64,000 bases of DNA from Macrostomum lignano. Taxonomy: Eukaryota. Shown one piece after another: positions 435 to 42,366 of this stretch (its first letter is position 1; each line of letters opens with the position of its first letter). A program made the translations under genes and the position numbers. The stretch covers positions 372,001 to 436,000 of the forward strand of contig NIVC01000085.1 in assembly GCA_002269645.1 (NCBI GenBank). Reading direction: 5' to 3'. The notes beneath the pieces are model-generated. The model did no database searches. It saw only the letters and a list, made by a program, of their open reading frames with translations, and had not been told where the DNA came from.

Positions 435-3400
435 ATGGCAACGGAGATGGAGCGGAAGCTGAGAGCGGCGCTGGAGGCTGGAGACAGCGAGGAGCTGCAG
501 CGACTGTGCGGTGAGGTCGGCAGCAACATCGAGCTGGAGGTGGGCGGGTTCGACGAGCAAGACTATCCCTATTTTACAGAGATTCTTGTAATGCCGCTGG
601 CCCATCACGTGGCCTGCAAGCCGGTGAGTTCGTCGTGCCTGGAGCTGCTGATTGACAGATTCGGACCCGACTGTCTGACACATGGACATGATAGGGGCAA
701 GACTCCAGTGCACTTTGCTGCTCAGCATCAGGACGAATCTTGGATGAAGCTGGTTAAAGAGAAGGGAGGCAGAGGCTGCTTGAGAATTGTCAGTGGATGG
801 AGAGAGACAGTCGCTCACTTTGCCGCTATGAACAGAAAAAGCAACTCTTGTCTGAAGTGGATGGTGAAGGAGCTCGGCAGCGACTGTCTCACAGTTCCTG
901 ACGAATTCGGTGACACGGCCGTCCATTTGGCCGCTCAGCATCAGGGCATCGAGTCGCTGGAGTGGATCAAGAGACAGATCGGAACTGGCTGCTTTCGGCT
1001 GAAGGGAGAAGGTGATAAACGAACATTTCACATTGCTGCTCAGAAGTCTGACAATTCAATGCTGAAGTGGCTGGTGAAGGAGCTCGGCAGCGACTGTCTC
1101 ACAGTTCCTGACGAATTCGGTGACACGGCCGTCTATTTGGCCGCTCAGCATCAGGGCATCGAGTCGCTGGAGTGGATCAAGAGACAGATCGGAACTGACT
1201 GCTTTCGGCTGAAGGGAGATGATGATAGAACAGCATTTCACTTTGCTGCTCAGAAGTCTGACAATTCAATGCTGAAGTTGCTGGTGAAGGAGCTCGGCAG
1301 TGACTGTCTCACAGTTCCTGACATAGACGATGACACAGCCGTCGATTTGGCCGCTCAGCATCAGGGCATCGAGTCGCTGGAGTGGATCAAGAGACAGATC
1401 GGAACTGACTGCTTTCGGCTGAAGGGATTGTGGGATAGAACAGCATTTCACTTTGCTGCTCAGAAGTCTGACAATTCAAATCTGAAGTGGCTGGTGAAGG
1501 AGCTCGGCAGCGACTGTCTCACAGTTCCTGACTATTGGGGTACCACGGCCGTCCATTGGGCCGCTGAGCATCAGGGAATCGAGTCGCTGGAGTGGATCAA
1601 GAGACAGATCGGAACTGACTGCTTTCGGCTGAAGGGAGATGATGATAGAACAGCATTTCACATTGCTGCTAAGAAGTCTGACAATTCAAATCTGAAGTGG
1701 CTGGTGAAGGAGCTCGGCAGCGACTGTCTCACAGTTCCTGACCAATGCGGTGACACGGCCGTCCATTTGGCCGCTCAGCATCAGGGCATCGAGTCGCTGG
1801 AGTGGATCAAGAGACAGATCGGAACTGACTGCTTTCGGCTGAAAGGAAGGCTCGATAGAACAGCATTTCACATTGCTGCTAAGAAGTCTGACAATTCAAA
1901 TCTGAAGTGGCTGGTGAAGGAGCTCGGCAGCGACTGTCTCACAGTTCCTGACCAATGCGGTGACACGGCCGTCCATTTGGCCGCTGTGCATCAGCCAGTC
2001 GACTCTCTTCAGTTCATTTTTGACCAAATCGGAGCCGAAATGCTCGGCTTGAAGAACAACGAGGGCAAAACACCGGCTGATATTGTTAAGAGTCGGCGGT
2101 TCTTCACAGACGAGTCAGCAAAGTGGACCTGGATTTCCTTAGCTGAGTGAGTCCTGACTGAAAACTGCTGCCTGACACTGAAAATACTGAAAATATTGTT
2201 TGGCGAAAATTCATTGCGCTTTGATGATCGGCGCCCTGAAACTCTCAGCAGCGCCGCAGTCAAGCGAGGGCGTCATGAATCTGTCAGTGCAGCTCCTCAT
2301 GGCGCCCCCAACCTCCTCATGGCGCCCCTAACCCCCTCATGGCGCCCCTAACCTCCTCATGGCGCCCCTAACCTCCCTATAGCGCCCCCAACCTTCTCAA
2401 TGCGCCTCCAATCTCCTCATGGCACCCTCAACCTCCCCATGGCGCCCCAACCTCCCACCCACATCTCAATCTGCAGGAGTTTTACACAAAGCATCATCGA
2501 GTTCAAGTGCCATCAAACTCTCCGAAGTTTCAAACTCTCCGATTTTAGTAGGAATGTACTTGGTGTGATGTTCAAAATATTGGCACTTGAATGATTTGAT
2601 CTCCCGATCGCGCCCCCAATGTCCATATAGCGCCACCCAAAGGTCAATCTGCAGGGGCTTCTTATTTACCTGAGGGTATGTACATGTACAAGATATACTT
2701 CGACAAGCCTCTGGCACTGGCGTGAGTTCATTCAGCCCACACAGCTATATCACACACAGCTACAGCACACACAGCTACAGCACACACAGCTACAGCACAC
2801 AGCTACAGCACACAGCTACAGCACACAGCTACAGCACACAGCTACAGCACACAGCTACAGCACACACAGCTACAGCACACACAGCTACAGCACACACAGC
2901 TACAGCACACACAGCTACAGCACACACAGCTACAGCACACAGCTACAGAAAACACAGCTACAGCACACACAGCTACAGCACACACAGCTACAGCACACAG
3001 CTACAGAAAACACAGCTACAGCACACACAGCTACAGCACACACAGCTACAGCACACAGCTACAGCACACAGCTACAGCACACAGCTACAGCACACACAGC
3101 TACAGCACACAGCTACAGCACACAGCTACAGCACACAGCTACAGCACACACAGCTACAGTACACACAGCTACAGCACACACAGCTACAGCACACACAGCT
3201 ACAGCACACAGCTACAGCACACAGCTACAGCACACACAGCTACAGCATGCAAATTATCCCTCATTGCTTCAATTCGCATTCCCTCAGACCCGAAGGCTGG
3301 GACTTCGTCCCAGCGTTCCTGAAGCGCTGGGACGCAGTCCGCCTCATCGGCCGTGGAGGCTTCGGCGAAGTCCACGAAGTTCGAACTGACACGGGCATCA

Positions 3401-4235
3401 CGTGCGCTGCCAAGACTCTCAGACTGCCTGTGCAGCTCGGTGATGAGCTGCCCTCTGTGAGCACAAGGATCCACAGAGCTGTCGAGAGCGAGAGAAACCT
3501 GTGCCGACTGCGACATCCCAACATCGTCATGTTCTTGGACATCGCTCAGCCGGAGCCCGCCACAGTCGTTGTGTTCATGGAGCTGCTGGACGGCCGAAGC
3601 TTGGAGAGGTTTATCGACAACAAGCCGCTGGACGAGCTGACGATTCGAGACTTCAGCGAGCAGGTGAGCATTGTGCATCCTTGATGCTCCTGTTCCATGT
3701 TCCCATGAATGATGACTGCTCACTGACCGACCTCTCGCAGATCTGCCGCGCACTGCTCTACCTGCACAGCCGGCAGCCGCCCGTGATCCACAGAGACATC
3801 AACTGCTCGAACATGATTGTTCGTGCTGACAACACGCGAATCAAGCTGATCGGCTTCGGCCTGTCAATCAAGCTGGACCAGTCAGTCAGCCACATTTCAG
3901 CCTCCACTCCGACTCCCAAAGGCACTCTGAACTTCATGGCGCCAGAGCTGCTCGGAGCGGGAGAGTCGGCCAGCGTGCAGTACAGACGAGAGTCGGACAT
4001 CTGGGCGTTCGGCTGCTCGGTCTTCCAGATGGCCTCCGGCGCGAGGCCGTTCGCAAACGCCAAAAGCATGTTAGAAATGGCCCAGCTGATCGACAGGAGG
4101 GGCGCCCCCGCCCTGCCGGACGGCCGGTCCGCAGAGCTGAGGGATTTCTACAGCCGCTGCACCGCCAAAGACCGCAGGAGGAGAAGATCCGCACAGGAGC
4201 TGCTGGGGCACGAGTTCCTGAGCAAAAACCTCTGA
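435..4235 (+). CDS. Gene A1: ankyrin-repeat (70-aa double-unit array) + STE/MAP3K-like kinase, predicted pseudokinase; join(435..2146,3288..3663,3741..4235), 860 aa
   Basis: ATG at 435; donor GA|GTGAGT at 2147 (phase 2) matches acceptor CTCAG|A at 3288 (phase 2); CAG|GTGAGC 3664 and GCAG|ATC 3741 are phase 0; summed length 2583 nt is divisible by 3. Ankyrin motifs [17 protein letters not shown]; kinase motifs GRGGFG, CAAK, HRDINCSN, KLIGFG (DFG altered), GTLNFMAPE, DIWAFG. Confidence 0.88.
851..1995 (+). repeat. Coding tandem array: 5 full + 1 partial 210-bp ankyrin double-repeat units
   Basis: Units start at 851, 1061, 1271, 1481, 1691, 1901; framework almost invariant. Confidence 0.95.
2750..3247. 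repeat. Intronic simple repeat (CACAGCTACAG-type)
   Basis: Direct reading; lies in intron 1 of A1 and generates the spurious low-complexity N-terminus of ORF 2722..3684. Confidence 0.95.
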
Positions 4236-4759
4236 CTCTCAGTGCTGTCTCAACACTGTCGGGAGATTTCGGAGCTTTATGTTCGGCGTAAATCGGATGA
4301 GAACAAAATTTCTTTTTCTAAAATTAGCCTACACTTCTATCCTTTTAAACTCTTCCTTATTTTATCCCCATGGCGCTTTAATTGCTATGAAAGCATGTTC
4401 CTTTTTAGAGCGTAGCTGGCCATTCGAAAAGCTGAGAAACTGCAAATTTCTTGAGTAGACAGTGAGAAGACAAAAGAGGAGGGCACCAACCAGCACCCAG
4501 CACTCACACAGCAACAAAGCAACCGAAATCATTTCCATTCTTCATCACAGCTCATGATATCCATTCTCCATCAGATGCATCGAGTTTGTCATATCGGTAA
4601 TTTATCAAAGCTATCAGGCTACTCCAGCCTGAACGTGAGCTGTCACTTGGACTGCATGGATATTAGGCCACATGGGCATTACTTGTGCTCAATCCGATTT
4701 GCTAGCATGGGCACCGGCAGGGCTTTTGATGGAGCTCTAATTTTTCTCCATTGGAATTG

Positions 4760-5058
4760 ATGGAGAATAGAGAAGCTGCGCTGGGATCTGATGGAGAATA
4801 GAAAAGCTGAGCTGGGATCTGATGGAGAATAGAGAAGCTGAGCTGGGATCTGATGGAGAATAGAGAAGCTGAGCTGGGATCTGATGGAGAATAGAGAAGC
4901 TGAGCTGGGATCTGATGGAGAATGGAGAAGCTGAGCTGGGATCTGATGGAGAATTTAGAAGCTGAGCTGGGATCTGATGGAGAATAGAGAAGCTGAGCTG
5001 GGATCTGATGGAGAATAGAGAAGCTGAGCTGGGATCTGATGGAGAATAGAGAAGCTGG
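4760..5058. repeat. 31-bp minisatellite (CTGGGATCTGATGGAGAATAGAGAAGCTGAG)
   Basis: About 9 units; same unit recurs at 15443-15658. Confidence 0.92.
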
Positions 5059-6782
5059 TCGAGTCGATAATTCTCAGCAGTCAGAGCCTCTGCAGTGAGG
5101 AGGCTGTCAGCTCTGCGAGTAAGTGATGCAGAATGAGGTGTCAGTCCCTAGCAGGAATTTGAATTTATTAATTTGCCTAGACTTCTCACCGGTTTCAGAG
5201 ATGTACTTCTAAACATTTTTTCGACATTCTCTGTTCGAGCACCAGCCGGTCCCAGTCCCAGACCCGCCCTATAAAATGTGTTTCATTTTTCTGCCACATT
5301 CTGTCTACATGACACAAATTCGCAATCACACTGGCCTCCAAAGGCCCAATTATGAGTGCCAGACTCGCATCTGAAAACTCGCAGGCAGCGAATTTTACAG
5401 TCATTGAGCACAGGCGCAATGCAAAGCTGTGAATGGTTTGAGCGGGGCAGGGTTAGCGCTCAAGCAGTTTGTCTCTGTGCCACCAACCCCCAGCCCAAAG
5501 CCTTTGAGTCCTCTTTTAACACGCGTTCGCATGCCGCTGTCTCGGCCCTCAAACCTCAGCTTCGCCATTGTCCTCTGGGCATTGAGCTCGGCTGGTCTGG
5601 AGCTGCTTGGACAGCTGGGGTCGGGGTGAGTACAGGCCTCATTCTTTTCGCTTCGATGTGCTCACAGCCCCAACCCCAGCCCTCAACTCATGGCTCAGAT
5701 GAAGGAGAGACAGGAGGAGATGCAGAGGCCGCACACAGCAGCCCAGCTGCACACAGCGGTGCCTCATCAGCTCTGCCCCATTGTCCAAAACCCCTGCACA
5801 AACCTCACCTGCTGTGCACCTGCCTCTACTTGCCGAATGAGCTCAGCATCTCTGCTGCATCAGTTTGAGCTCTGACAGATGAAGAGCGAATGGAGGCTGG
5901 GAGAGGCAGGGAGTGGCTGCGAATTTGCTGACGCAGCTGCTAAGGACAGGTGGGGCGAGCGGAGCGCAGAGAACCTCGAAATGAGCGGCCCAGCAACTGA
6001 GCTGAGTGAGAAATTCTCAGAGACTTGCAGTTGCTTAAGCCTTCTGCAAGGGAAGTAGATGGAGAAGGGGGTGGGTGAGAGGGAGATAGGGGAGAGGGAG
6101 ATGGGTGAGAGGGAGATAGGGGAGAGGAAGATGGGTGAGAAGGATATATGTGAGAAACACAATACACACAAACACAAAGTTTTGTTTACCCGATTGACCT
6201 TTTTGTTTAGCTTATTTGTTTTCTATTCGATTACTCTTCTTGTTGTCTAATTACATCTTTTGTTTATTCAACTGCGTGTTTTGTTTATTTGACTGCCTTG
6301 TTTGTTTAACTGATTAGATTTCGAATTTTGAATTATCGTTTTGTCTACTGATCACCTGCTGCTACCCGATGCCCGGATCAGTTATCAATCACAGTTTTGT
6401 TTATTCGTCTGCGATTCGGAATTCAAATTTTATTTATTTGACTGCCGGGTTTGTTTTACCGGTTGCTCCTTTCAATTAGTGAGACATTTTTGAGCTGACT
6501 CGAGTGCCATTCCAGTTTCAAGCTGATCAATGTTGATTTTGAAACTCTGGCACAAAGCCAATCACAATTTCCCCAATCTGCTCAGACTGCTCAATGCCTA
6601 CTCCAGATTTCTGTTGCCGAGAATTTTTCACATTTTTCTGCCACCGGTTTGGCGCTTTTTCCGGCTCTGATTTTTGTATTTGATTTTTGGACTGACTTTT
6701 TATTAGCAACTGTTGGAGCAGGAAGTCCAGCGCTTACTCAAGAGTTCTCAGTTAAATATACAGCCACCGCTTGGCTTGCCGT

Positions 6783-7195
6783 GAACCGCTGTGTCCTGAC
6801 TTGCCGTGACCCGCTGTGTCCTGACTTGCCGTGACCCGCTGTGTCCTGACTTGCCGTGACCCGCTGTGTCCTGACTTGCCGTGACCCGCTGTGTCCTGAC
6901 TTGCCGTGACCCGCTGTGTCCTGACTTGCCGTGACCCGCTGTGTCCTGACTTGCCGTGACCCGCTGTGTCCTGACTTGCCGTGACCCGCTGTGTCCTGAC
7001 TTGCCGTGACCCGCTGTGTCCTGACTTGCCGTGACCCGCTGTGTCCTGACTTGCCGTGACCCGCTGTGTCCTGACTTGCCGTGACCCGCTGTGTCCTGAC
7101 TTGCCGTGACCCGCTGTGTCCTGACTTGCCGTGACCCGCTGTGTCCTGACTTGTCGTGACCCGCTGTGTCCTGACTTGCCGTGACCCGCTGTGAC
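6783..7195. repeat. 25-bp minisatellite (CCCGCTGTGTCCTGACTTGCCGTGA)
   Basis: Tandem array; paralogous array at 23905-24277. Confidence 0.95.
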
Positions 7196-7879
7196 CCATT
7201 TCATATTTCAATATTTCGCAGCGTCATTTCTGAGCCTCACTCAGTGCAATGCACACAACAGTGCGGGAAGGCAGAGCTGATGAAGCAGGCATGCAGTGAA
7301 GCTGGCCATTGTTTTCAAGTGGCTTGTAGAGTGTCATGAGGTCTGAGGCTGCCTCACGGCTCGGCCCCTCACGCAGTGAGCAAAGAGATGTGCAGAGCCC
7401 TTAACTGCACAGACGCTGCAGAGCTGCTCCAGTTGCCATGGCAATGGGGGAGACTCGAGCTCGGAGAGTCTGTGGACAGCTGAGCAATGTGCTCACCTGG
7501 AGGCTGGGTGGTGCGGCTTGTTGCTTCATCTGCACAAAAGTGTGTTCAAACGAGCATCAGCCATTCTGTGCATCTCATTTGAACAGCAGATGCTGCATCA
7601 ATGATGCTGGCAGACACTTGAGTCTGTGCTCACTCAGTGCACTGTGAAATGTACATAAATAAGTGTTTGCAGTGGCTTCGCATTGCATTGAACTGAGACA
7701 ATGGCGGGGCATGAGGGCTGCTCAGCCACCTCAGCGGGGCGCCGCTGTTTTGAGCAGAAAAATGAAAATAAAACCGCATTTCTGCTTTCATTTAGACCGA
7801 ATTTGGTGGGAAAACACTTTTGAGACTACTCTAGATAGCAGAGTATGGTTTTAAACTGAATGCACACTTTTGCTGTTAG

Positions 7880-8153
7880 ACATGGTGTCCTGTTAGACAT
7901 GGGAGTCTCCTGTTAGACATGGGAGCCTCCTGTTAGACATGGGAGCCTCCTGTTAGACATGGGAGTCTCCTGTTAGACATTGGAGTCTCCTGTTAGACAT
8001 GGGAGTCTCCTGTTAGACATGGGAGTCTCCTGTTAGACATGGGAGTCTCCTGTTAGACATGGGAGTCTCCTGTTAGACATGGGAGTCTCCTGTTAGACAT
8101 GGGAGTCTCCTGTTAGACATGGGAGTCTCCTGTTAGACATGGGAGTCTCCTGT
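7880..8153. repeat. 20-bp minisatellite (TGTTAGACATGGGAGTCTCC)
   Basis: Tandem array; paralogue at 24950-25850 is interrupted by a solo LTR. Confidence 0.95.
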
Positions 8154-8599
8154 TTGATATGACAGTCTTCTTTACTCTTCTCTCTCTGCCCTCTCATATC
8201 CAGCAAAGTTATCATAATTTTCTAGTAGGTTACATGCAGGCGTACATCGGAGAATTATTAATTCATGCATATGTCATGTCGCTTTGTCCCCATCTTTGTG
8301 AGATTCTGGTGAGGGTAAGATCAGGGCAAAAGGGCGTAGAATAGAAGGTAAAAAGGGGTTTTTAGGTTTCATGCTATTGTTAATTTTGATCGATGAATTC
8401 ATGTACTGTTTTTGACCGATTCTTCATAGCTACCCTACATGTAAGAGTTATGATCATGCTTGTCTATGATCTACATGTACTGAGTATGACCGCAATCGCC
8501 TATGACCTGTACTATGACCGTAATTGTCTATGACCTACTGAGAACGACCGTAATTGTCTATGACCTACTGAGAACGACCGTAATTGTCTATGACAGTTT

Positions 8600-9405
8600 G
8601 AGCACAGTTTAACCAACTTAGGCTTACTGAGCACAGTTTAACCAACTCAGTATTATTGAGCACAGTTTAACCAACTCAGGCTTACTGAGCACAGTTTAAC
8701 CAACTCAGGCTTACTGAGCACAGTTTAACCAACTCAGTATTATTGAGCACAGTTTAACCAACTCAGGCTTACTGAGCACAGTTTAACCAACTCAGGCTTA
8801 TTGAGCACAGTTTAACCAACTCAGGCTTACTGAGCACAGTTTAACCAACTCAGGCTTACTGAGCACAGTTTAACCAACTCAGGCTTACTGAGCACAGTTT
8901 AACCAACTCAGGGTTACTGAGCACAGTTTAACCAACTCAGTATTATTGAGCACAGTTTAACCAACTCAGGCTTACTGAGCACAGTTTAACCAACTCAGGC
9001 TTACTGAGCACAGTTTAACCAACTCAGTATTATTGAGCACAGTTTAACCAACTCAGGCTTACTGAGCACAGTTTAACCAACTCAGGCTTACTGAGCACAG
9101 TTTAACCAACTCAGGCTTACTGAGCACAGTTTAACCAACTCAGGCTTACTGAGCACAGTTTAACCAACTCAGGCTTACTGAGCACAGTTTAACCAACTTA
9201 GGCTTACTGAGCACAGTTTAACCAACTCAGGCTTACTGAGCACAGTTTAACCAACTCAGGCTTACTGAGCACAGTTTAACCAACTCAGGCTTACTGAGCA
9301 CAGTTTAACCAACTCAGGCTTACTGAGCACAGTTTAACCAACTCAGAATCTGTGAGCACAGTTTAACCAACTCAGGCTTACTGAGCACAGTTTAACCAAC
9401 TCAGG
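8600..9405. repeat. 29-bp minisatellite (GAGCACAGTTTAACCAACTCAGGCTTACT)
   Basis: About 27 units with recurrent variant AGTATTATT. Confidence 0.95.
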
Positions 9406-9439
9406 TGTACATGGATTTAGTTAGTTCTAGTAGGTTGCT

Positions 9440-9620
9440 AAGTATGAGGGTTAGAGATTATTCGGGCTTTCGCAAATCCATGTGTTGAGTTGGGTAAAAT
9501 TTGGGATAGAAAGATTATAGAAAGAGTGCTTAGTTTTCCGTCTCTACACTCTGTCCATAAATGATTAAAAAGTCCTCTGTTTCTCTCAGTTGTCAGGCAA
9601 CTTGGGGTTGATCTCGCCTT
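9440..9620 (-). mobile_element. Possible degenerate non-LTR (LINE) reverse transcriptase fragment
   Basis: Minus-strand translation includes ILPNSTHGFAKAR, resembling the LxxxQHGFRxxRS motif of LINE RTs; short and decayed. Confidence 0.35.
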
Positions 9621-10469
9621 CTTGGGCAGCTTCAGGTTGAATAGGAGTCTGTAGGTGGGCCTCACGTTTTCTCCCTCAGGTGCGCCAGAATGCCGCGTGC
9701 CGCGTTGTTCTCTAAGTCAGGCCTCTCCTCGGTTGGCTTCTCCCAGCCGGTTTGAGCGCCATTGTGCCTGCGGCGGGGTGTTGCTACTAACCGGAATGGA
9801 AAGGGGCTTTATTAGATTCGGCTATTCAAATTGACTTGACAGTTGATTAATTATCTTAAAGCTGCTTCTGTTTGCCCTTCTAATAGCTATCTAGGGGTTC
9901 CATTGTGCTCCTTTGCCTCGCCCTTCACTGCGCCTGTGCATTTCATAAATTTCTACCTATCTTCTAACTTAGAGTAAAACTTCAGATTTCTAACTCTTAT
10001 AAGCAAACTGCACATACTTTACATTGCTGCACTGCAGTGCCATCCAATACTGATCTGGCAGAGAAATTATTAATGCAGAATTGCTGTCAGTCTGTTGGAC
10101 CGGGTAAAATGATGTAATAATGTGATGGCACTGGCTGTGTGAGCAGTCAGTTACCTGAATGATGGATATATATATATAGAGGATAGAGAGAGAGAGATGT
10201 AAGCTACTTGTTAATCAGCTACTCAATAGCCGTTATCTTTAGTCCTGAAAAAATTTTCTTTCTGTAATGAAAATGAAGTAATCGAACTGAGCCAAGGTAT
10301 TTGAGCCTGCATGCATAAGCTATGAGCCATAGGAAAATTCTTATAGGATTAGTAATGATAATTAGGCTAGGTCACCTGCTCGTGTCACCTGGGCGAGGCT
10401 GGACGGCAACGAAAGGACCCAATGTGAGCCTGGAGCGAGGGGACAAAAGCTAAGAAGTACATGTAGGCC

Positions 10470-12612: not shown

Positions 12613-15600
12613 TAGTTCGGCCCACACAACCATCAGCAGCAGCAGCAACGATGAAGCACGACGGCCGGGTCCGATCCAGCCGTGTTCACATAGAACTGGT
12701 ATGCAGGCGTTCAATCTTTCTCACCAAGTAGTTGCTATTGCGTAGTTCTCTCTCTTGCTATTGTGTAGGTTTCGAATAAAGCGACTGAGCACAAATATGA
12801 GCGCGGAAAAGAAGAGAAACTTTCAACTTGCGCCCGAACAATGGAGCCATTGCAGTTATAAGACTTGGTCTGCACATACTGAAAGTAAAAAGAGGTGCGA
12901 CAATCACCGCCCATTCCGACCCACGAAAAACCGCCTATACATGCTGGTTGCCTGACTTTCCGGAGTCTGGACAAGCATTTCTTAGAAAACACCAGTTTTT
13001 CCAACCAAGAGGACGTGAGCGGCAAAAGACCAGAGCTGGAGGATGACATGCGGCAGAGGCTGAGTTGCAGTGAAATGCATCGATTACTGTATTCATTAGT
13101 TTAAATAAAAATTGTAAAATATTGAATTATGTAGACACATCGGTGCACATGCAGGCGATATGAATTTCAACCGCTGTCTGGTTGCCTCGTCAGACGGAGT
13201 CCACGATGAAAACTCTGGACTGCGATGTCTGCGAGGCAGTCATACAGTGTGAGAGAGCGGACTAGACAGCATCACGCAGGGCTAGTAGGGTGCTGGCGTC
13301 AACAGAACCGGATGTTTGAGACGTTGTGGCTCGGCTATAGGAATCAGCCTTGTCATGTGGCACAGCAAACGACCTGTTGACTTGATCCCAGGTGCTGTCC
13401 GCTAAAATTTAGGCAAAAAGGCCTACCAAATCCAGCCATGTGCGCCGACTGATGGCATTAAAATTGCTCTATTCAGAAAATTCAGTAAATAAACAAAAAA
13501 GAGTAAAGTTAAAAACTGTTTGCTTAATTAAAGTTGCTTGCCAGTGTTAGATAGTCACCTTAGAAAGCGAAGCATGCCAGCTCTTAGGGGAGTCAAGCAT
13601 GCTGGTCAAGCGTAAGACCATGGTTACCCCTTTGAGAGTCCCCCGCAGGCGTCAGCAACCCGACACCACGGCTGTTGGGGGCGGAATCCGTTCGCCCTTG
13701 GGAAAAGCCACCTCGAGGTGAGGAGGAGGCAGACGGAGCAGCACTGCGGCGACCATGGAACGCCACTCTGCTCTCCGAATGTTGGAACTCGACTCAAGTT
13801 CGCGTCACGGCAGCGGCAGGAAGGTGGGTGCGACCCCTTGTTGGCTGCAACTTTTGTGTCCGCTAGTGACAGAAGGCTGGAGGAGAGACCGAGGGGCCGT
13901 AGGCGGCACGGGCACCCGGTACCCCGGTAGGAGGGACCAGTGCACGGGCCTGAGGAGTGAGCCGCCCTGTTTTGGGTGCAGTCTGTTGGGATGGCGAACC
14001 CGGCTGACTGGAGGTGAGGCACTGGTGTGCAGGGACCGATGCAGTTGTTGTTCACTTTTCCCGCTCAAATAGTTTTGCTCAGCTCTGGGCAGGCACGCGG
14101 TCACCGAGTTTGAAGCTCGGTTGTGTAGATAAGCAGGCACGGAGAGCAGCGAGGATCAATAAGCCCTGCTGAAAATGGAGCAAGCAACAAAGTTTAAAAT
14201 ATTTTCTACTGTACCATTGCTCATCACTGCAACCAGCCGGAAGCGCATGATCGCACCTCCAGCCATTGCTCAGCCTACTCGATACCTGCTGAATTTGCTT
14301 ACCTGTGGGCCCACGCATCTTGTGAAGACAACTGATTTGCCCTGGAAACTACTGATTTCCCATGAATCTGTGACCCAGCAGAAGCCCAAAAAGCAATCCT
14401 TGAAATCCTATCGCATTGTCTGCATAGTGTACATGTATGCTGATTAGTACAGTGATTTTAGTTAATATTAGTTCAGCTCCATTAAAAACCAACCCATTGT
14501 ACCAGAGTGCCTAAGAAGTTGGCCTTCATGGCTGGCCTGGGAATCACCTCAGGCCAATCGCACAGAATCGAACCACAGTACATGTATAATTTTTTCGCAA
14601 GAGGCAGCTGCTCAGCCCCTCAATTGCAGTCTAGGGCTTCATCAGTTGTTTATTATTAAAGTGCAGCCGAGCTCTGGCAGCCCATCTCAATTCTGTCCAG
14701 CTCTCGGCCGCAGCAACTCACTGCATTTTGCACTCCTGCCACCTGCAGCCAGCAGCAACAGACAGGCTTTGAGCCGCACTGAATGGCCTGAGAGCCATCA
14801 AATTCTGAGATTCGAGCATGGCAACAATGCCTTATTTATGACAAAACGCAGTCTTGAGCCGTAGGGAGCGGGTGGTTAGAGAGGCCAGCTCAACCTCAAG
14901 CAGTAATTATCTCTGCTCGCTCGCTATTCTCAGGCCACGCACCGCTCTGCCAGCCTCCCTGCAGTTTGGCAGACTCTGGGGGGCAACCAGCAGTGCAGCG
15001 CTCGGTCTCTGTTTTGAGCAGTGAGCTGGGTGGAGTTGCATTGTAGCTGGACTTGTTTATTGTCTCAGGCAGGGTTTGGGTGGTTCGAGAGGCCAGTATG
15101 GGGTGATTGCGAACTCGAGCAGTTTTCTCTTTGCCGGCTGCTTTTATCACGCCAGACTATCGCACTGCGAGTGCTGAGCTGGGTGGGGCCGCTAACGATG
15201 AAGGTTGGAGATTTAATTAGCGATGAGGCTGCAGAGATGAGCAGCGCAAACCTGAGCTGTCTGAGGCTGCAGTGGCGGCTGCTCCCGAATGAGTTGCAGC
15301 CCCAGCCTCGCACAATGGAGACTCTGCATTGTGCTTGAGCACCCTGCCTGCCCCCCCCCCACTGGCTGAGCTGGCGTCCAGCTGCACTTTTAGCTTTTTT
15401 AGCTTTCTCGAAACAGGAGAAAACAAGCGTTTTTTGGGTTTGAGCTGGGATCTGATGGAGAATAGAGAAGCTGAGCTGGGATCTGTGGAGAATAGAAAAG
15501 CTGAGCTGGGATCTGATGGAGAATAGAGAAGCTGAGTTGGGATCTGATGGAGAATAGAGAAACTGAGCTGGGATCTGATGGAGAATAGAAAAGCTGAGCT

Positions 15601-15892
15601 GGGATCTGATGGAGAATAGAAAAGCTGAGCTGGGATCTGATGGAGAATAGAGAAGCTGGCGTGAGGGGGAGGATGAGAGGGGGATGGGTGAGAAGGGGAT
15701 GGGTGAGAGGGGGATGGGTGAGAAGGGGATGGGTGAGAGGGGGATGGGTAAGAGGGGATGGGTGAGAGGGGGATGGGTGAGAGGGGGATGGTGAGAGGGG
15801 GATGGTGAGAGGGGGATGGGTTAGAAAGGGATGGGTGGGAGGGCTGTGTAAAAGGGAGATTGTGAGAGAAACCCAATAGAGACAATCAGATG

Positions 15893-16335
15893 GTTATGGC
15901 ACATGAGCAATGGCTGTGTGCATGAGATATGGGTCATGGCACATGAGCAATGGCTGTGTGCATGAGATATTAGTCATGGCACATGAGCAATGGCTGTGTG
16001 CATGAGATGTGGATCATGGCACGTGAGCAATGGCTGTGTGCATGAGATATTGGTTATGGCACATGAGCAATGGCTGTGTGCATGAGATATGGGTCATGGC
16101 ACATGAGCAATGGCTGTGTGCATGAGATATTAGTTATGGCACATGAGCAATGGCTGTGTGCATGAGATATTAGTTATGGCACATGAGCAATGGCTGTGTG
16201 CATGAGATATTAGTCATGGCACATGAGCAATGGCTGTGTGCATGAGATATGGGTCATGGCACATGAGCAATGGCTGTGTGCATGAGATATTGGTTATGGC
16301 ACATGAGCAATGGCTGTGTGCATGAGATATGGGTC
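15893..16335. repeat. 40-bp minisatellite (ATGGCACATGAGCAATGGCTGTGTGCATGAGATATGGGTC), left array
   Basis: About 11 units, preceded by a GGGGATGGGTGAGA array at 15675-15840. Confidence 0.95.
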
Positions 16336-17390
16336 AACATCTCAGTGCTTCCGCATCTCCGGACTCTGTTTAGCAGATACGGCATCCCGTTGGAAATCGT
16401 CAGCGACAATGGACCTCCGTTTAACTCGGCAGAATTCACAAACTTCCTCTCAGAGTTCGGCATCAAGCATCGCCGGATCTGTCCGCTGCACCCCGAGGCG
16501 AACGGAGCGACCGAGCGAGTCAACAGGTGCATCAACAAGGTCATCAGAGCGGCCATCGCAGAAGGACGCAACTGGCGCACCGCACTCGACGACTGGCTGC
16601 TCGCTCATCGCGTCACTCCGCACTCGGCAACCGGCGTGGCACCAGCCGAACTGCTCATGGGCCGAGCTCTCAACGACGGCCTCCCGTCAATCCAACCATC
16701 GCAACCTGTGCAGCACGACCGCGCCGAACTCGCAAAGCGCCACGAGGCCTACAACGACCAGATGGCAGCAGGTTTCAACCGCTCCAGGAGGGCCAAGGCA
16801 GCCAATGTCAAGCCGGGTTCGGCGGTTCTCCGCAAGCGGACGAGACACACGAAAATTCAAACGCCTTTCGAGCTCGAACCCTGGACCGTCACCGACAGGC
16901 GAGGCGATTCCTACGTCCTGCGGCAAGGCGACCGGACATGCACTCGCCACCTGACGCACATCCGGGCTCTGACAGCGACCGAGGACCCACCACCAGAAGC
17001 GGACGCTGGCGCCGCCTCGCCGGAGCGCGGCATTGCTGAGAGGCCGCACCCGAGAGCGGCCAAGGACAAGCCTATCAGCTACAGAGTTTGACGGGTTTTG
17101 ACGGGTAACTGGTGCTAAGGGCTGAGACAAGTGTTTTTTACCCTTAATGTTTTATTCCTTTTTCCTTATCTTTTTAATCCGCATTTTTGAGCTTTTTTGT
17201 TTTTGGGGAGAAGTGTAATTGCCTCGCAATATTATTATCAATTTGTTCTAAATAGGCGAGTGAGTTATATTATAAATGTACATCATGTGTCGCATGAGTC
17301 ATGTACGCCGTACGCGTAAAACCTCAAATATATATATCGCTAACCTGGCCAGTTAGGGCCCCGTGTTTGATTTTCTCGCTCAGCTTAACA
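16336..17390 (+). mobile_element. 5'-truncated Ty3/Gypsy-like LTR retrotransposon: integrase C-terminal half, PPT and 3' LTR
   Basis: LFSRYGIPxxIVSDNGPPF...HPEANGATERVN with exact D-35-E spacing; stop at 17091; PPT GGGGAGAAG 17205-17213 then TGTAA (17214) to TTAACA (17390). Confidence 0.88.
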
Positions 17391-17410
17391 CGCGGCCTTC
17401 AGACTTTACA

Positions 17411-18556
17411 GATGGGTGAGAAGGATGGGTGAGAAGGATGGGTGAGAAGGGGATAGGTGAGAAGGGGATAGGTGAGAAGGGGATAGGTGAGAAGATGGGT
17501 GAGAAGGGGATGGGTGAGAAGGGGATGGGTGAGAAGGGGATGGGTGAGAAGGGGATGGGTGAGAAGGGGATGGGTGAGAAGGGGATGGGTGAGAAAGGGA
17601 TGGGTGAGAAGGGGATGGGTGAGAAGGGATGGGTGAGAAGGGGATGGGTGAGAAGGGGATGGGTGAGAAGGGGATGGGTGAGAAAGGGATGGGTGAGAAG
17701 GGGATGGGTGAGAAGGGGATGGGTGAGAAGGGGATGGGTGAGAAGGGGATGGGTGAGAAGGGGATGGGTGAGAAGGGGATGGGTGAGAAGGGGATGCGTG
17801 AGAGGATGAGTCTGTGTGCATGAGATATGGGTCATGGCACATGAGCAATGGCTGTGTGCATGAGATATGGGTCATGGCACATGAGCAATGGCTGTGTGCA
17901 TGAGATGTGGGTCATGGCACATGAGCAATGGCTGTGTGCATGAGATATGGGTCATGGCACATGAGCAATGGCTGTGTGCATGAGATGTGGGTCATGGCAC
18001 ATGAGCAATGGCTGTGTGCATGAGATATGGGTCATGGCACATGAGCAATGGCTGTGTGCATGAGATATGGGTCATGGCACATGAGCAATGGCTGTGTGCA
18101 TGAGATGTGGGTCATGGCACATGAGCAATGGCTGTGTGCATGAGATATGGGTCATGGCACATGAGCAATGGCTGTGTGCATGAGATATGGGTCATGGCAC
18201 ATGAGCAATGGCTGTGTGCATGAGATATGGGTCATGGCACATGAGCAATGGCTGTGTGCATGAGATATTAGTCATGGCACATGAGCAATGGCTGTGTGCA
18301 TGAGATATGGGTCATGGCACATGAGCAATGGCTGTGTGCATGAGATGTGGGTCATGGCACATGAGCAATGGCTGTGTGCATGAGATGTGGGTCATGGCAC
18401 ATGAGCAATGGCTGTGTGCATGAGATGTGGGTCATGGCACATGAGCAATGGCTGTGTGCATGAGATATTAGTTATGGCACATGAGCAATGGCTGTGTGCA
18501 TGAGATATGGGTCATAGCACATGAGCAATGGCTGTGTGCATGAGATATGGGTCATG
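17411..18556. repeat. Composite satellite: 15-bp GGGGATGGGTGAGAA array then 40-bp array (right copy)
   Basis: Same two units, in the same order, as 15675-16335. Confidence 0.95.
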
Positions 18557-18689
18557 GGCTTCATCCCGCTCGGCTGTCCTGCTGGTCCAGCCTCAGGAGC
18601 TGGTGACTGGCGAGCTTGTTGGCTGTGCTCAGGTACTCAGTGAGGCGCTCTTCGTGCTGGTTCTGAGGGCATTGGGGCTGGGGTCTGCT

Positions 18690-18880
18690 GAGATGTGGGT
18701 GTGCTCAGGTGGGATCTGGGTGTGCTCAGGTGGGATCTGGGTGTGCTCAGGTGGGATCTGGGTGTGCTCAGGTGGGATCTGGGTGTGCTCAGGTGGGATT
18801 TGGGTGTGCTCAGGTAGGATTTGAGTGTGCTCAAGTGGGATCTGGGTGTGCTCAGGTGGGATCTGGGTGTTCTCAGGTGA
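18690..18880. repeat. 21-bp minisatellite (GGGTGTGCTCAGGTGGGATCT)
   Basis: Direct reading. Confidence 0.9.
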
Positions 18881-19528
18881 AGTTGTATCGGAAGAAAGTC
18901 ATTATCTTACCCGGTACACAGGGTAGACGGGTAGAAAAAATATCCGCATGCGGGCTGGGGCTGAAATACACGTATAATAAATAAATAAATATAAATCATA
19001 TCTGTACACATTCAATAAACGTACCAGTACGATAGGAGCGTACGAAAAAATCAGGCCATCTTCCTCCTAAACATGGACGACCTATTGATTGTCGCATGCA
19101 AAAATGTGTGTGGAATTTTTGTATAAAGCTACTCTCCCGCTTATCTCATTTAGAACTCCGCTTATCGCACAGCGGTGCTGCTCCACATCGACACTGCCCT
19201 ATCATTTAACACTGCCCTATCATTTAACACTGCCCTATCATTTAACACTGCCCTCCGTCTCTATATTACAAGTGCGTCAAAGTTGAACTAACCCATACTG
19301 ATCTTGAAGATAGAGAAGAGAATCGGCCTCAGTCCATTTAAACAAATTTCTCTGCACAGGGAGAGCTCAGAGATTTCAGTCCGTGACAGCCGCACTTTTG
19401 CTGCTGCTGCTGAGCTGGCAGGCAAATTCGCTTGAAGAAGAGCAAAGCACTCAGTTTGAAGCCGTGTGGAACAGCTGCGGCAGACAGCAGATCGGCAGAG
19501 AAGCGCTGCTAGGAGAAGAAGTGTAGCC

Positions 19529-22500
19529 ATGGCAACACAGATGGAGCGGAAGCTGAGAGCGGCGCTGGAGGCTGGAGACAGCGAGGAGCTGCAGCGACTG
19601 TGCGGTGAGGTCGGCAGCAACATCGAGCTGGAGGTGGGCGGCTTCGACAAGCAAGACTTTCCCTTTAGAGAGATTCTTAAAATGCCGCTGGCCCATCACG
19701 TGGCCTGCAAGCCGGTGAGCTCGTCGTGCCTGGAGCTGCTGATTGACAGATTCGGACCCGACTGTCTGACACATGGAAATGATAGGGGCAAGACTCCAGT
19801 GCACTTGGCTGCCCAGCATCAGGACCAGTCTTGGATGAAGCTGGTTAAAGAGAAGGGAGGCAGAGGCTGCTTGAGAACTGTCGACAGATGGGAACAGACA
19901 GTCGCTCACTTTGCCGCTATGAACAGAAAAAGCAACTCTTGTCTGAAGTGGCTGGTGAAGGAGCTCGGCAGCGACTGTCTCACAGTTCCTGACGGATGGG
20001 GTGACACGGCCGTCCATTTGGCCGCTCAGCATCAGGGCATCGAGTCGCTGGAGTGGATCAAGAGACAGATCGGAACTGACTGCTTTCGGCTGAAGAGACG
20101 GTGGGAAAGAACAGCATTTTACTTCGCTGCTCAGAAGTCTGACAATTCAAATCTGAAGTGGCTGGTGAAGGAGCTCGGCAGCGACTGTCTCACAGTTCCT
20201 GACTCTAGAGGTGACACGGCCGTCCATTTTGCCGCTCTGCATCAGGGCATCGAGTTGCTGGAGTGGATCAAGAGACAGATCGGAACTGACTGCTTTCGGC
20301 TGAAGGGAGATGATGATAGAACAGCATTTCACTTTGCTGCTGAGAAGTCTGACAATTCAAATCTGAAGTGGCTGGTGAAGGAGCTCGGCAGCGACTGTCT
20401 CGCAGTTCCTGACAAATTCGGTCACACAGCCGTCCATTTGGCCGCTGAGCATCAGGGCATCGAGTCGCTGGAGTGGATCAAGAGACAGATCGGAACTGAC
20501 TTCTTTCGGATGAAGGGAGATGATGATAGAACAGCATTTCACTTTGCTGCTCAGAAGTCTGACAATTCAAATCTGAAGTGGCTGGTGAAGAAGCTCGGCA
20601 GCGACTGTCTCACAGTTCCTGACAGACTCGGTGACACGGCCGTCCATTTGGCCGCTCGGCGTCAGCCAGTCGACTCTCTTCAGTTCTTTTTTGACCAAAT
20701 CGGAGCCGAAATGTTCAGCTTGAAGAACAACAAGGGCGAAACACCGGCTGATATTGTTGAGAGTCGCTGGTGCTACACAGACCAGTCAGCAAAGCGGGCC
20801 TGGATTTCCTCCACGCAGCGGCGGCTCGAAGCCTCTCGGCCTTCCGCTGGCAGCTCAGCGCCGACTGCCGCCTCAGCTGGGTGAGTCCTGACTGAGAACT
20901 GCTGCCTGACACTGAAAATACTGAAAATATTGTTTGGCAAAAATTCATTGCGCTTTGATGATCGGCGCCCTGAAATTCTCAGCAGCGCCGCAGTCAAGCG
21001 AGGGCGTCATGAATCTGTCAGTGCAGCTCCTCATGGCGCTCCCAACCTCCCCATGGCGCCTCCAATCTCCTCATGGCGCCCCGACCTTCTCATGGCGCCC
21101 CCAGTCTCCTAATGGGCCCCAACCCCCCACCCATAACTCAATCTGGATCAAAGCATCAGCGAGTTCAAGTGCCATCAAACTCTCCGATTTTAGTAGGAAT
21201 GTACTTGGTGTGATGTTCAAAATATTGCCACTTGAATGATTTGAGAGCCTCCAATCTCTTCGTGGCGCCGCAATCTCCCGATCGCGCCATATATAGCGCC
21301 ACAGGTGACGCAGAAGGGTGGTGACGCAGAAGGGTGGTGACACAGAAGGATGGTGACGCAGAAGGGTGGTGACGCAGAAGGGTGGTGACGCAGAAGGGTG
21401 GTGACGCAGAAGGGTGGTGACGCAGAAAGCTGGTGACGCAGAAGGGTGGTGACGCAGAAGGGTGGTGACGCAGAAGGGTGGTGACGCAGAAGGGTGGTGA
21501 CGCAGAAGGCTGGTGACGCAGAAGGCTGAGTGACTACAAAGTACTCAGAAAGCCCCAAGCAACACAAAATTCATCAATTCCTTCATTTCATGCTTCAGCG
21601 CCAAGAAGCAGCTGGACCCCAGCTTCACCGACTGGGACTTCATCCTGCAGGACAACAAGAAGCAGCTCATCGGCCGTGGCGGATTCGGTGAGGTGTACAA
21701 GGCCCTCACAGACCGCAACCAGACGGTGGCTGTCAAGGTGCTGCCCCTGAGCGGCACCGGCCAATCGGGGAAGCTGCAGAAAGCCGTCGAGTTGGAGAAG
21801 CGGGGAGTTGAGATCCTCAAGCGACTCTCGCATCCCAACATTCTGCAGTTCCTCAAGTGCGAGCAGAAGTCGGACGGGCTGTACATCTTCACCGAGCTGG
21901 TCTCGGGTCACAGCCTCTTTGAGCTGATGCAGCGTCAGAACAAGCCGTTCAAGGAGTCCGGGGTCAGGGACTTCTCCAGACAGGTGCGTCTCTGAGTTCT
22001 CTGGCATTGCCTGGCATGGGTGGGATGTGGGACTAGTGTGGGATCAGTGTTGGATCAGTGTGAGATCGGTGTGGGATCAGTGTGGGATCAGTGTGGGATC
22101 AGTGTGGGATCAGTGTGGGATCAGTGTGGGATCGGTGTGTGATCAGTGTGAGATCAGTGTGGGATCAGTGTGAGATCGGTGTGGGATCAGTGTGGGATCA
22201 GTGTGGGATCAGTGTGGGATCAGTGTGGGATCAGTGTGGGATCAGTGTAGGATCAGTGTGGGATCGGTGTGGGATCAGTGTGGGATCAGTGTGGGATCAG
22301 TGTGGGATCAGTGTAGGATCAGTGTGGGATCAGTGTGGGATCAGTGTAGGATCAGTGTGGGATCAGTGTAGGATCAGTATGGGATCGGTGTGGGATCAGT
22401 GTGGGATCAGTGTGGGATCAGTGTGGGATCAGTGTAGGATCAGTGTGGGATCAGTGTGGGATCAGTGTGGGATCAGTGTGGGATCAGTGTGGGATCAGTG

Positions 22501-23238
22501 TGGGATCGGTGTGGGATCAGTGTGGGATCAGTGTGGGATCAGTGTGGGATCAGTGTAGGATCAGTGTGGGATCAGTGTGGGATTAGTTTGGGATCAGTGT
22601 GTGATCAGTGCGGGATCAGTGTGGGATCAGTGTGAGATCGGTGTGGGATCAGTGTGGGATCAGTGTGGGATCGGCGTGGGATCAGTGTGGGATCAGTGTG
22701 GGTGGGAGCAGGTATGTTGTCTCATGACTACTCAAAACTGCCCCACCTGCAGATCTGCTCAGGCCTGAACTTCCTGCACTGCCAGCCGGAGGGCGCCATC
22801 TTGCACCGTGACATCAAGAGCTCCAACGTGATGCTCACCAGCAAAGGCGTCATCAAGCTGATCGACTTCGGCCTCGCCAAGGAGATCGTCGGCACCTGCG
22901 GCCTGAGCACAGGCGTCGATCCCAAAGGCACCCCCTACTTCATGGCGCCCGAGCTGTTCATGGGCGAGGGCGATTCGATTCCGTACTCAGCCAAGACCGA
23001 CGTGTGGGCCTTCGGCTGCACCGTGTATGAGCTGACGGCCATGCAGCCTCCTGACGCGAACGTTCAGCAGTTCAGGATCGCCGTGCTGAGGTGCGGAGGG
23101 CGGGCGATGCCTCGGATTGCGGACGGGTTCTCAGCCGGCCTGAAAGACTTCTACCTCAGGTGCGTAGACTATGACCCGAGGAAGCGAGCGGACACCGCGG
23201 AGCTGCTGCGGCACAGCTTCCTGAGTGCCTCATCGTGA
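19529..23238 (+). CDS. Gene A2: ankyrin-repeat array + canonical STE11/MAP3K-like kinase; join(19529..20880,21599..21983,22753..23238), 740 aa
   Basis: GG|GTGAGT donor (phase 2) fits TTCAG|C acceptor; CAG|GTGCGT and GCAG|ATC are phase 0; 2223 nt divisible by 3. Motifs [37 protein letters not shown] all intact; 3 full + 1 partial 210-bp units. Confidence 0.9.
21305..21530. repeat. Intronic 16-bp minisatellite (GGTGACGCAGAAGGGT)
   Basis: In intron 1 of A2. Confidence 0.92.
22030..22700. repeat. Intronic 11-bp minisatellite (TGTGGGATCAG)
   Basis: Fills the intra-kinase intron of A2. Confidence 0.95.
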
Positions 23239-25472: not shown

Positions 25473-25711
25473 TGTTGTGACTGACAATGCTTGCGCAATG
25501 AACTGACCACTAACAATTAACTATTGACCTTATTGAATGCGTGGGCGTATATTGTACTCAGACTAGAATGAGTAGGTGATTGCGTATCGATTTGGCAATG
25601 CAACGTGCAAGTAGGAGTTTCACCTCTATAAATATATTGTGAGCGAGATGTGTATCTCTGAACTCAAAAGCTTCAATCAAAGAAACTCTCTGTGTTAATT
25701 AGAACACAACA
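25473..25711 (+). mobile_element. Solo LTR, 239 bp
   Basis: TGTTGTG...CACAACA perfect 7-bp inverted ends, 5-bp TSD CATGG (25468-25472, 25712-25716), internal TATAAATA; absent from the paralogous satellite at 7880-8153. Confidence 0.88.
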
Positions 25712-42062: not shown

Positions 42063-42366
42063 CTGCAGCACCAGGATTTAGCACCAAGGGGCTTTAGCAC
42101 CAAGAGGCGCCAGCACCAAGGGGATTTAGCACCAAGGGGTTTTAGCACCAAGGGGCGCCAGCACCAAGTTAGCTCGGACCTTCAAGCAATCAACGTGCAC
42201 TTTAAACCGAATAACTTGCCTCTAGAATGATTTTTTGACATCAAACTTTCGATGTAGGGTTGGCGACTTGGGACACAGGCTTTAGAAACGCGAAAAAACG
42301 CTATTGCGAATCTCGAAGTCACGCAAGCAAAACAGACAAAACCGCTCTCCGAAATCCACTAAGCAG

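Follow-up and report, generated by a model that had tools for sequence, protein, structure and literature searches.

Near-identical ankyrin repeats with variable binding-face positions in a family of ankyrin–kinase genes of the flatworm Macrostomum lignano

Two ankyrin–kinase genes with tandem repeat arrays

The subject of this sequence-based analysis is a 64-kb stretch of contig NIVC01000085.1 of the flatworm Macrostomum lignano (the window), which contains two paralogous genes on the plus strand (gene 1, 435–4235; gene 2, 19529–23238), each encoding an array of near-identical ankyrin repeats followed by a protein kinase. The differences among the repeats are concentrated in a few codons, which correspond to positions on the concave face of the ankyrin fold and show an excess of amino acid changes. 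In both genes, one large exon holds the whole ankyrin array, and two further exons encode an ASK1/STE20-like kinase. The arrays were detected by Tandem Repeats Finder as 210-bp repeats (851–1994, 5.4 copies, 92% matches; 19942–20665, 3.4 copies, 91% matches) and lie inside long open reading frames (ORFs) that begin with the ATG codons at 435 and 19529. Each 210-bp unit represents a pair of 35-residue ankyrin repeats, here termed A and B, which alternate strictly.

A conserved 5′ flank and leader (218–434 in gene 1, 19312–19528 in gene 2, plus strand) precedes both genes and belongs to a block that is 93.6% identical between them (blastn, 218–1565 versus 19312–20656); the same leader precedes the ATG codons of nine paralogous loci. 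Exon 1 of gene 1 (435–2145) starts with a cap and two degenerate ankyrin repeats (435–851; amino acids 1–139 of the translation), continues with an array of 11 near-identical 35-residue ankyrin repeats (852–2006; repeat period of 210, Pfam Ank matches, unit table), and ends with a C-terminal capping repeat and a short tail (2007–2145) in front of the GT donor at 2146 (GTGAGT). The kinase is encoded by exon 2 (3288–3663, N-lobe; Pfam Pkinase; tblastn to the close paralogue P0007, 90%; splice sites read from the sequence) and exon 3 (3741–4235, C-lobe; Pfam Pkinase, 2e-30), which contains the motifs HRDINCSN and GFG and the stop codon at 4233–4235.

Exon 1 of gene 2 (19529–20881) comprises an N-terminal cap with two degenerate ankyrin repeats (19529–19942; identical to P0006), an array of 7 near-identical ankyrin repeats (19943–20677; Tandem Repeats Finder, unit table, AlphaFold model), and a C-terminal capping repeat with a Ser/Ala/Pro-rich linker (20678–20881) in front of the GT donor at 20882. 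Kinase exon 2 (21599–21983, N-lobe; Pfam Pkinase, 2e-18; tblastn to P0006, 99%) is followed by exon 3 (22753–23238; stop codon at 23236–23238), whose motifs are intact and which matches STK25, SLK, and ASK1 in the PDB (~1e-36). The protein is identical to that of BOX15_Mlig028886g1 (P0006, contig NIVC01000085.1); because this gene model stems from the GenBank annotation of the source assembly, which was built from RNA-seq data and a de novo transcriptome (PMC5730564), it provides indirect support for transcription of gene 2. A 60-bp stretch of the gene 2 linker (20811–20870) is missing from gene 1 near 2139, where the donor phase is unchanged; a G-to-A change causes the unspliced reading of gene 1 to end in TGA.

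The identity of the repeats as ankyrin repeats, proposed in an earlier note on this DNA, is borne out by Pfam (Ank_2, 1e-43 and 1e-33; Ank_4, 2e-43) and by matches of the array to PDB sequences that include NOMPC, ankyrin-1, and designed ankyrin repeat proteins (DARPins). In the AlphaFold model (predicted local distance difference test [pLDDT], 84.6 overall, ~90–95 in the repeats), each repeat forms paired helices, in alternation along the array; pLDDT drops below 50 in the linker region of gene 2 (residues 438–454). The only families that match the proteins in Pfam are Ank and Pkinase, which leaves no NACHT or NB-ARC domain and does not place them among the NOD-like receptors (NLRs) or other signal transduction ATPases with numerous domains (STAND). 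A hydropathy scan found no signal peptide and no membrane segment in either protein; the N-terminus is hydrophilic, and the peaks of 19-residue Kyte–Doolittle hydropathy (1.0–1.25) lie inside the kinase or the ankyrin core. The proteins are therefore soluble and cytoplasmic, and the term “receptor kinases”, which the earlier note had used, does not apply in its usual sense; a membrane receptor kinase was rejected on the same grounds. A prokaryotic or phage origin was considered and also rejected.

The hexanucleotides that the note had singled out are all present in the sequence, at their coordinates and with the translations claimed. Those following CCTGAC encode EF (903, 1113), ID (1323), YW (1533), and QC (1743, 1953) in gene 1 and GW (19994), SR (20204), KF (20414), and RL (20624) in gene 2; those following AAGGGA or AAGAGA encode EG (1008), DD (1218, 1638), LW (1428), and RL (1848) in gene 1 and RW (20099) and DD (20309, 20519) in gene 2. 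The variable residues thus read, in order, EF/EG/EF/DD/ID/LW/YW/DD/QC/RL/QC in the array of gene 1 and GW/RW/SR/DD/KF/DD/RL in that of gene 2. The A-type hexamer is flanked by short direct repeats (CCTGAC NNNNNN GGTGAC; 897–918 and each A unit of the window), and two of the A hexamers are palindromic restriction sites (GAATTC, TCTAGA), which is probably a coincidence. The span given in the note (851–20660) is too wide: it takes in ~17 kb between the arrays, which contain the intron and kinase exons of gene 1 as well as intergenic DNA, minisatellites, and a retroelement fragment that do not belong to the feature.

Location of the variable positions

Variation was analyzed among 62 A and 49 B units (111 in total) from 14 arrays, which comprise those of the window and of nine paralogous loci in the same assembly; the differences in sequence and repeat number described here are those among paralogues. 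Within the two arrays of the window, 6–7 of the 36 codon columns contain about half of all nucleotide columns that vary (gene 1, 10 of 23 and 8 of 16; gene 2, 10 of 21 and 9 of 13), and this uneven distribution persists in the larger sample. Outside the hot columns, entropy is mostly below 0.5 bits per codon, but it amounts to 2.0–3.0 bits at ankyrin positions 2, 3, and 13 and to 1.1–1.6 bits at positions 5 and 14. The A units peak at columns 18 and 19 (2.5 and 2.9 bits; 8 and 11 amino acids), 22 (1.6 bits), and 30 and 31 (2.3 and 1.1 bits), and the B units at columns 17–22 (up to 3.0 bits, with insertions or deletions) and 30 (2.0 bits).

By the Pfam register and the AlphaFold model, the hot columns correspond to ankyrin positions 2, 3, 5, 13, and 14 in A units and to positions 1–5 and 13 in B units. 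The variable residues are located in the loop preceding helix 1, at the tip of the beta-turn, and at the C-terminal end of helix 1. The library positions of DARPins are 45, 46, 48, 56, and 57, repeating from the next repeat (+33), on the concave face (PMC10484509); because they represent positions 2, 3, 5, 13, and 14 of the repeat, the structural claim of the earlier note is correct. Outside the arrays, in the non-repeated parts of the proteins, the N-terminal repeats (12 paralogues compared) and the C-terminal cap are variable at these beta-turn positions as well.

Several details of the initial description had to be modified. The variable patch of the B type is not a clean di-residue but a loop of 3–6 residues whose length varies by insertions and deletions (e.g., GDDDR, GGFWKR, TKCDR). 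Variation at the His of TAVHL is specific to gene 1: of 62 units in the larger sample, 60 retain His. Nor can the framework be called “frozen”, as the units of gene 1 differ from the family consensus by 14 non-synonymous and 3 synonymous framework changes. The number of common states is small, with SR, KY, KD, and EY accounting for 53% of the A units.

Evidence for selection on the variable codons

Pooled Nei–Gojobori estimates of non-synonymous divergence (dN) at the two core codons are 1.17 (A) and 1.44 (B), which is 10–18 times the synonymous divergence (dS) of the framework (~0.08–0.115). The framework itself has a dN/dS of 0.45–0.59, and the non-coding DNA around the two genes of the window has diverged by 6–7%, which is close to the framework dS. 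Parsimony counts on neighbor-joining trees of distinct units yielded 16–31 non-synonymous changes in the hot columns, compared with ~4.5 expected at the tree-wide synonymous rate (Poisson p, 1e-5 to 1e-16). This excess of amino acid changes fits the diversifying selection postulated in the earlier note.

The most robust argument for selection is the spelling of the variable codons. Each recurrent di-residue of the A units has one spelling, without synonymous variants in 62 units (SR = TCTAGA, 11 times; KY = AAATAC, 8 times; KD = AAAGAC, 8 times; EY = GAATAC, 6 times), and the third bases A and C are kept in most A states while bases 1 and 2 change. At the A hot codons, the diversity of the third base is lower than that of the first two; the B loops show two small spelling variants. 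The unchanged silent third bases at the A hot codons argue against a local mutational hot spot or a great age of the differences. The single spelling further implies that identical states are copies by descent rather than the result of convergence.

Concerted evolution and array turnover

The framework differs by 3.7 per 90 nucleotides between units of the same gene but by 6.0 between units of different genes. Its DNA identity is 93–96% across the sample and 96% within genes, and the within-gene amino acid identity (A, 86%; B, 84%) rises to 92–94% if the variable positions are disregarded. The 70-residue super-units are 84–87% identical, which is borderline for the ~85% over at least 100 residues that defines high internal conservation; variable sites on the binding face and variation in repeat number are both present.

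The number of A/B pairs per array ranges from 2 to 14, and the sequence of variable residues (barcode) differs in every gene. Over 4.3 kb of kinase exons, introns, and 3′ flank, gene 1 aligns collinearly with one of the paralogous loci (L003) at 95.7% identity, whereas their arrays consist of 11 and 7 units, respectively, and differ at nearly every variable position. The longest first-exon ORF, in locus L001 (9932–13460), is uninterrupted over 1176 codons and encodes 14 A/B pairs; the annotated protein (P0001) has 835 amino acids, with part of the array treated as an intron. This array contains internal block duplications, in which the series SR-DDD-KY-...-IL-WLD recurs.

A two-gene ankyrin–kinase region has been assembled twice, as loci L007 and L008, with 97–99% identity and the same barcodes (L007 1–5901 versus L008 9443–15353; L007 7367–13222 versus L008 16750–22605). 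Such a duplication is consistent with the redundancy for which the DV1 assembly is known; the copy in L007 has a frameshift near 1290, in a B unit. The identity of the barcodes speaks against ongoing hypermutation.

Kinase modules

The two genes are ~93% identical from 218 to ~2600 (19312–21244 in gene 2) and again from 6317 to 8581 (23429–26285), but the intervening segments that contain the kinase exons (2600–6316 and 21245–23428) are not alignable. At the protein level, the kinases of genes 1 and 2 are only ~40% identical and represent two classes. That of gene 1 is shared with P0007, P0017, and three genes on the minus strand of the window (~81% DNA identity). The association of two kinase classes with the same type of array means that the kinase module is exchangeable, and the alignments indicate that a kinase cassette has been exchanged. 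Class-I kinase exons are 97.7–99.2% identical among paralogues, with a dN/dS of 0.13–0.58.

The kinase of gene 2 has all catalytic motifs of an active kinase (G-loop, VAIK lysine, HRDxKxxN, DFG, APE) and by its sequence looks catalytically competent. Gene 1 lacks these motifs in two places (GFG, HRDINCSN). The replacement of DFG by GFG is caused by a GAC-to-GGC change at 3852–3854 and is not a sequencing error, because it is present also in P0026, a gene model from an independent assembly; P0007 retains DFG. Judged from these motifs, gene 1 may encode a kinase-dead member of the family or be a decaying copy, and its product may not signal as a kinase. Its array has 1.27 framework amino acid changes per unit, compared with 0.8–1.1 in most paralogues, which is not decisive for relaxed constraint.

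The kinase of gene 2 matches STK25, SLK, MST4, and ASK1 in the PDB, all at ~1e-35 to 1e-36 and ~30% identity, and ASK1 ranks first in a Foldseek search (TM score, 0.82–0.86). Kinase matches dominate the Foldseek results of the two-domain model, which reveal little about the ankyrin part. “MAP3K-like”, as the earlier note had it, appears to be a fair label, as does STE-like, although the sequence is equidistant to several STE subfamilies and orthology cannot be claimed.

Distribution of the family

The best matches to the long ORF of gene 1 are ~40 proteins, all of M. lignano, with 56–83% identity, and nearly all of them combine Ank and Pkinase domains. Older paralogues (P0008, P0017, P0021–P0023) share the A/B architecture of ~70 residues but have ordinary, diverged repeats, which identifies the near-identity of the repeats as the derived state of one young subfamily. 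A word-indexed search for homologues outside M. lignano retrieved only generic ankyrin proteins with less than 30% identity. When 1.84 billion representatives were searched exhaustively and the ten best-ranking additional matches were looked up, nine of them again proved to be proteins of M. lignano. The tenth is an intron-less transcript (Logan SRR28338164 and SRR28338163; L010, L011) encoding an ankyrin–kinase protein of 877 amino acids that is 54% identical to P0047, a member of the classical-repeat branch of M. lignano. Judging by this transcript, the wider superfamily is present in at least one further organism, whereas the subfamily with near-identical repeats was found only in M. lignano in the data searched.

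Comparison with known repeat systems

The closest known case, which the earlier note did not mention, is that of fungal NLRs with internally conserved ankyrin (ANK), tetratricopeptide (TPR), or WD repeats (Podospora HET-E/D/R, the nwd family, Pa_3_8560; Dyrka et al. 2014, PMC4986451). Like the arrays of Macrostomum, they combine near-identical repeats (at least ~85% identity) of polymorphic number with concerted evolution and positive selection at a few positions of the concave binding face, and different output domains are joined to the same type of array; internally conserved repeats make up only ~0.8% of metazoan ANK/TPR/WD repeats (PMC4986451). The Macrostomum family differs from fungal NLRs by the lack of NACHT/NB-ARC domains, its STE/MAP3K-like kinase output, its animal host, and a unit that consists of a 70-residue A/B pair of 35-residue repeats. 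Another difference in setting is that we know of no mutagenesis of the repeat-induced point mutation (RIP) type in animals.

DARPins share with the Macrostomum repeats a near-identical, consensus-like framework and diversity at positions 2, 3, 5, 13, and 14 of the concave face. However, the Macrostomum repeats are natural, have 35 instead of 33 residues, alternate between two types, and are fused to a kinase. Moreover, the Macrostomum repeats vary at position 1 of the B type but not at position 33, their B loop is of variable length, and the arrays extend to 28 repeats.

The analogies to transcription activator-like effectors (TALEs) and lamprey variable lymphocyte receptors (VLRs), drawn in the earlier note, are loose, as both have a different fold and ligand and there is no sign of somatic assembly in the Macrostomum genes. 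TALEs resemble the arrays in their tandem repeats of ~34–35 residues that are near-identical except for a di-residue with few common states. By contrast, their unrelated fold binds DNA, with the di-residue at positions 12/13 reading the bases, the Macrostomum repeats have at least five variable positions each, and there is no evidence of a code that assigns one repeat to one letter; a TALE effector was rejected, since Pfam and the structural model identify the repeats as ankyrin. VLRs likewise diversify the concave surface of a repeat scaffold used for recognition but are extracellular leucine-rich repeat proteins assembled somatically from cassettes.

The ankyrin repeats of RNase L are a ligand sensor. 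Like the Macrostomum proteins, RNase L, ILK, and TNNI3K have ankyrin repeats at the N-terminus and a kinase or pseudokinase behind them, and the Foldseek alignment of RNase L covers both domains (16% identity), albeit with a poor global superposition (TM score, 0.27). Unlike the Macrostomum genes, all three are present in single copy, their repeats are diverged and not hypervariable, and the RNase domain of RNase L is absent from the Macrostomum proteins. As for the kinase, ASK1 (MAP3K5), STK25, SLK, and MST4 are the best matches to gene 2 in sequence and structure, but the regulatory domains of ASK1 are absent, and the class-II kinases have the motif HRDINCSN.

A putative recognition repertoire and its alternatives

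We consider it probable, with moderate confidence, that the genes belong to a Macrostomum-specific multigene family in which soluble proteins with an ankyrin solenoid linked flexibly to an ASK1/STE20-like Ser/Thr kinase form a recognition repertoire driven by conflict. The units are recent copies of one another, and the greater similarity of units within than between genes and the range of 2–14 pairs point to unit duplication, unequal crossing-over, or gene conversion; such copying explains why the framework is ~96% identical in DNA. Selection for amino acid change apparently keeps positions 2, 3, 5, 13, and 14 different between units and genes. Lining the concave face, where ligands are bound, these positions provide each paralogue with its own binding barcode in front of a conserved kinase. 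The array presumably binds a protein ligand, which may switch on or target the kinase, and the family as a whole would supply a set of intracellular modules for recognition that is encoded in the germline. Its evolution would most likely be driven by conflict with partners that change rapidly, for example pathogens or selfish elements.

Several observations weigh against this explanation. Identical variable residues were copied by descent, so that independent changes are far fewer than the units; because the units recombine and are not independent, pooled Nei–Gojobori estimates and parsimony counts overstate the number of events. A per-site binomial test in the style of single-likelihood ancestor counting (SLAC) is underpowered (p = 0.03–0.9), and the argument therefore relies on comparison with the synonymous rate across the whole tree and on the lack of silent variants. 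The data represent a single inbred line and a redundant assembly, in which alleles, paralogues, and copies on duplicated chromosomes are not fully separable. Gene 1 is without the aspartate of DFG, and all class-II kinases (HRDINCSN) are without the lysine of the catalytic loop. Finally, a substrate adaptor for ordinary endogenous signaling fits the same data.

That last alternative survives best, although it is unlikely. The family would represent an ordinary expansion of signaling kinases, and the array a docking adaptor that diverged to accommodate endogenous partners, possibly related to reproduction in this hermaphrodite, with no role in the recognition of non-self or in conflict. M. lignano has dozens of ankyrin–kinase clusters, many with ordinary diverged repeats, and the kinase is kept conserved by purifying selection; moreover, the order of ankyrin repeats and kinase is common in endogenous signaling proteins, such as ILK and TNNI3K. 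However, subfunctionalization rarely keeps repeats ~96% identical while driving 7–11 amino acids at the contact codons, and a turnover of 2–14 pairs between loci whose flanks are 95.7% identical would be unusual. The same signature is enriched among non-self receptors in fungi (PMC4986451).

A narrower version of the recognition hypothesis, which we advance only tentatively and regard as rather unlikely in this specific form, holds that the proteins are a hitherto unrecognized class of germline-encoded immune or conflict receptors inside the cells of Macrostomum, whose natural DARPin-like array, by a shuffled, combinatorial binding surface, recognizes proteins of pathogens or selfish elements and directly activates the fused ASK1-type MAP3K. 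Kinase-dead members such as gene 1 could then act as decoys, and the system would be a functional parallel to NLRs in which a kinase replaces the NOD module.

It is improbable that the pattern arose without positive selection, i.e., that the variable codons are unconstrained surface positions subject to drift, or carry old differences, and that the framework merely looks young owing to concerted evolution. Concerted evolution is indeed evident from the greater similarity of units within genes, and neither pooled dN/dS over recombining repeats, which is no formal test, nor the weak per-site binomial tests provide a strong counterargument. Yet drift or age would saturate the third positions, whereas K is always encoded by AAA, E by GAA, Y by TAC, and D by GAC in the 62 A units, and third-base diversity at the A hot codons remains below that of the other two bases. 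Furthermore, conversion tracts cannot skip six nucleotides unless selection rejects the homogenized products, and the dN of the hot codons is more than 10 times the non-coding divergence between paralogous loci (6–7%).

A very improbable alternative is targeted mutation or somatic diversification by hypermutation, assembly from cassettes, or a diversity-generating retroelement. The variation is extremely local, the A hexamer is flanked by TGAC...GGTGAC, and micro-conversion from older, diverged paralogues may contribute. However, genomic copies with 97–99% identity share their barcodes, silent changes are absent from the A-type hot codons, and all states are germline-encoded in the assembly. 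A diversity-generating retroelement was rejected, since the only retroelement piece is an integrase fragment and there is no template repeat with an adjacent reverse transcriptase in the corresponding arrangement.

Artefacts of assembly or functionless pseudogenes are scarcely credible and were likewise rejected: although the long-read assembly is highly redundant and repeats are hard to assemble, the L007 copy is frameshifted, annotated models often collapse the repeats (L001), and gene 1 combines GFG with several unusual framework changes, the 14 arrays have open frames of up to 1176 codons, dN/dS is 0.45–0.59 in the framework and 0.13–0.58 in the kinase, the GFG of gene 1 recurs in a model from an independent assembly, and the model of gene 2 is RNA-based.

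The proposed recognition repertoire follows a known evolutionary pattern; what is new is the animal lineage, the STE/MAP3K-like kinase output, and the A/B format of 35 + 35 residues. Literature searches that covered Macrostomum ankyrin genes, six gene identifiers, and family expansions yielded no description of this ankyrin–kinase family. Near-identical repeats with hot spots at ligand contacts have so far been analyzed mainly in fungal NLRs, and DARPin engineering imitates the same design. Their occurrence in Macrostomum suggests that a repeat solenoid subject to both concerted evolution and diversifying selection represents a general way of evolving recognition repertoires, which arose independently of NOD modules. 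To our knowledge, the innate sensors of flatworms are poorly known, and the family provides a concrete candidate for intracellular recognition receptors in this group as well as a natural collection of ankyrin binders in which to look for targets. RNA interference is feasible in M. lignano. As the species can also be kept in laboratory culture and made transgenic (PMC5730564), the recognition hypothesis is directly testable.

Neighboring genes and repetitive DNA

The minus strand of the window contains three more ankyrin–kinase genes (38515–42077, 45889–48936, and 53722–57276), which raises the cluster to five, with near-identical arrays in two only. In the minus-strand genes, a short exon with ordinary ankyrin repeats (e.g., 42077–41580 and 57276–56764) precedes a class-II kinase with HRDINCSN and an intact DFG motif; the first of these genes is a near-identical tandem duplicate of the third. 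Large tandem segmental duplications in the right half of the window (33–44 kb versus 41–58 kb) share minisatellites (34079/42077, 34786/42635, 37651/51368, 39773/54977, 40846/56342).

An ORF of 273 codons (16270–17091, plus strand), located ~2.4 kb upstream of gene 2, encodes a fragment of a retroelement integrase core. One public gene model (P0033) fuses the integrase fragment to an ankyrin–kinase gene, which is probably an annotation artefact.

The G+C content of the window is ~50%, and the sequence is rich in minisatellites (73 Tandem Repeats Finder rows), which are dense in introns and intergenic DNA and have periods of 11–42 bp. Homologous minisatellites that differ in copy number are located downstream of genes 1 and 2 (6775–7193/23906–24277 and 7873–8154/24949–25472) and occur also in the paralogous loci.

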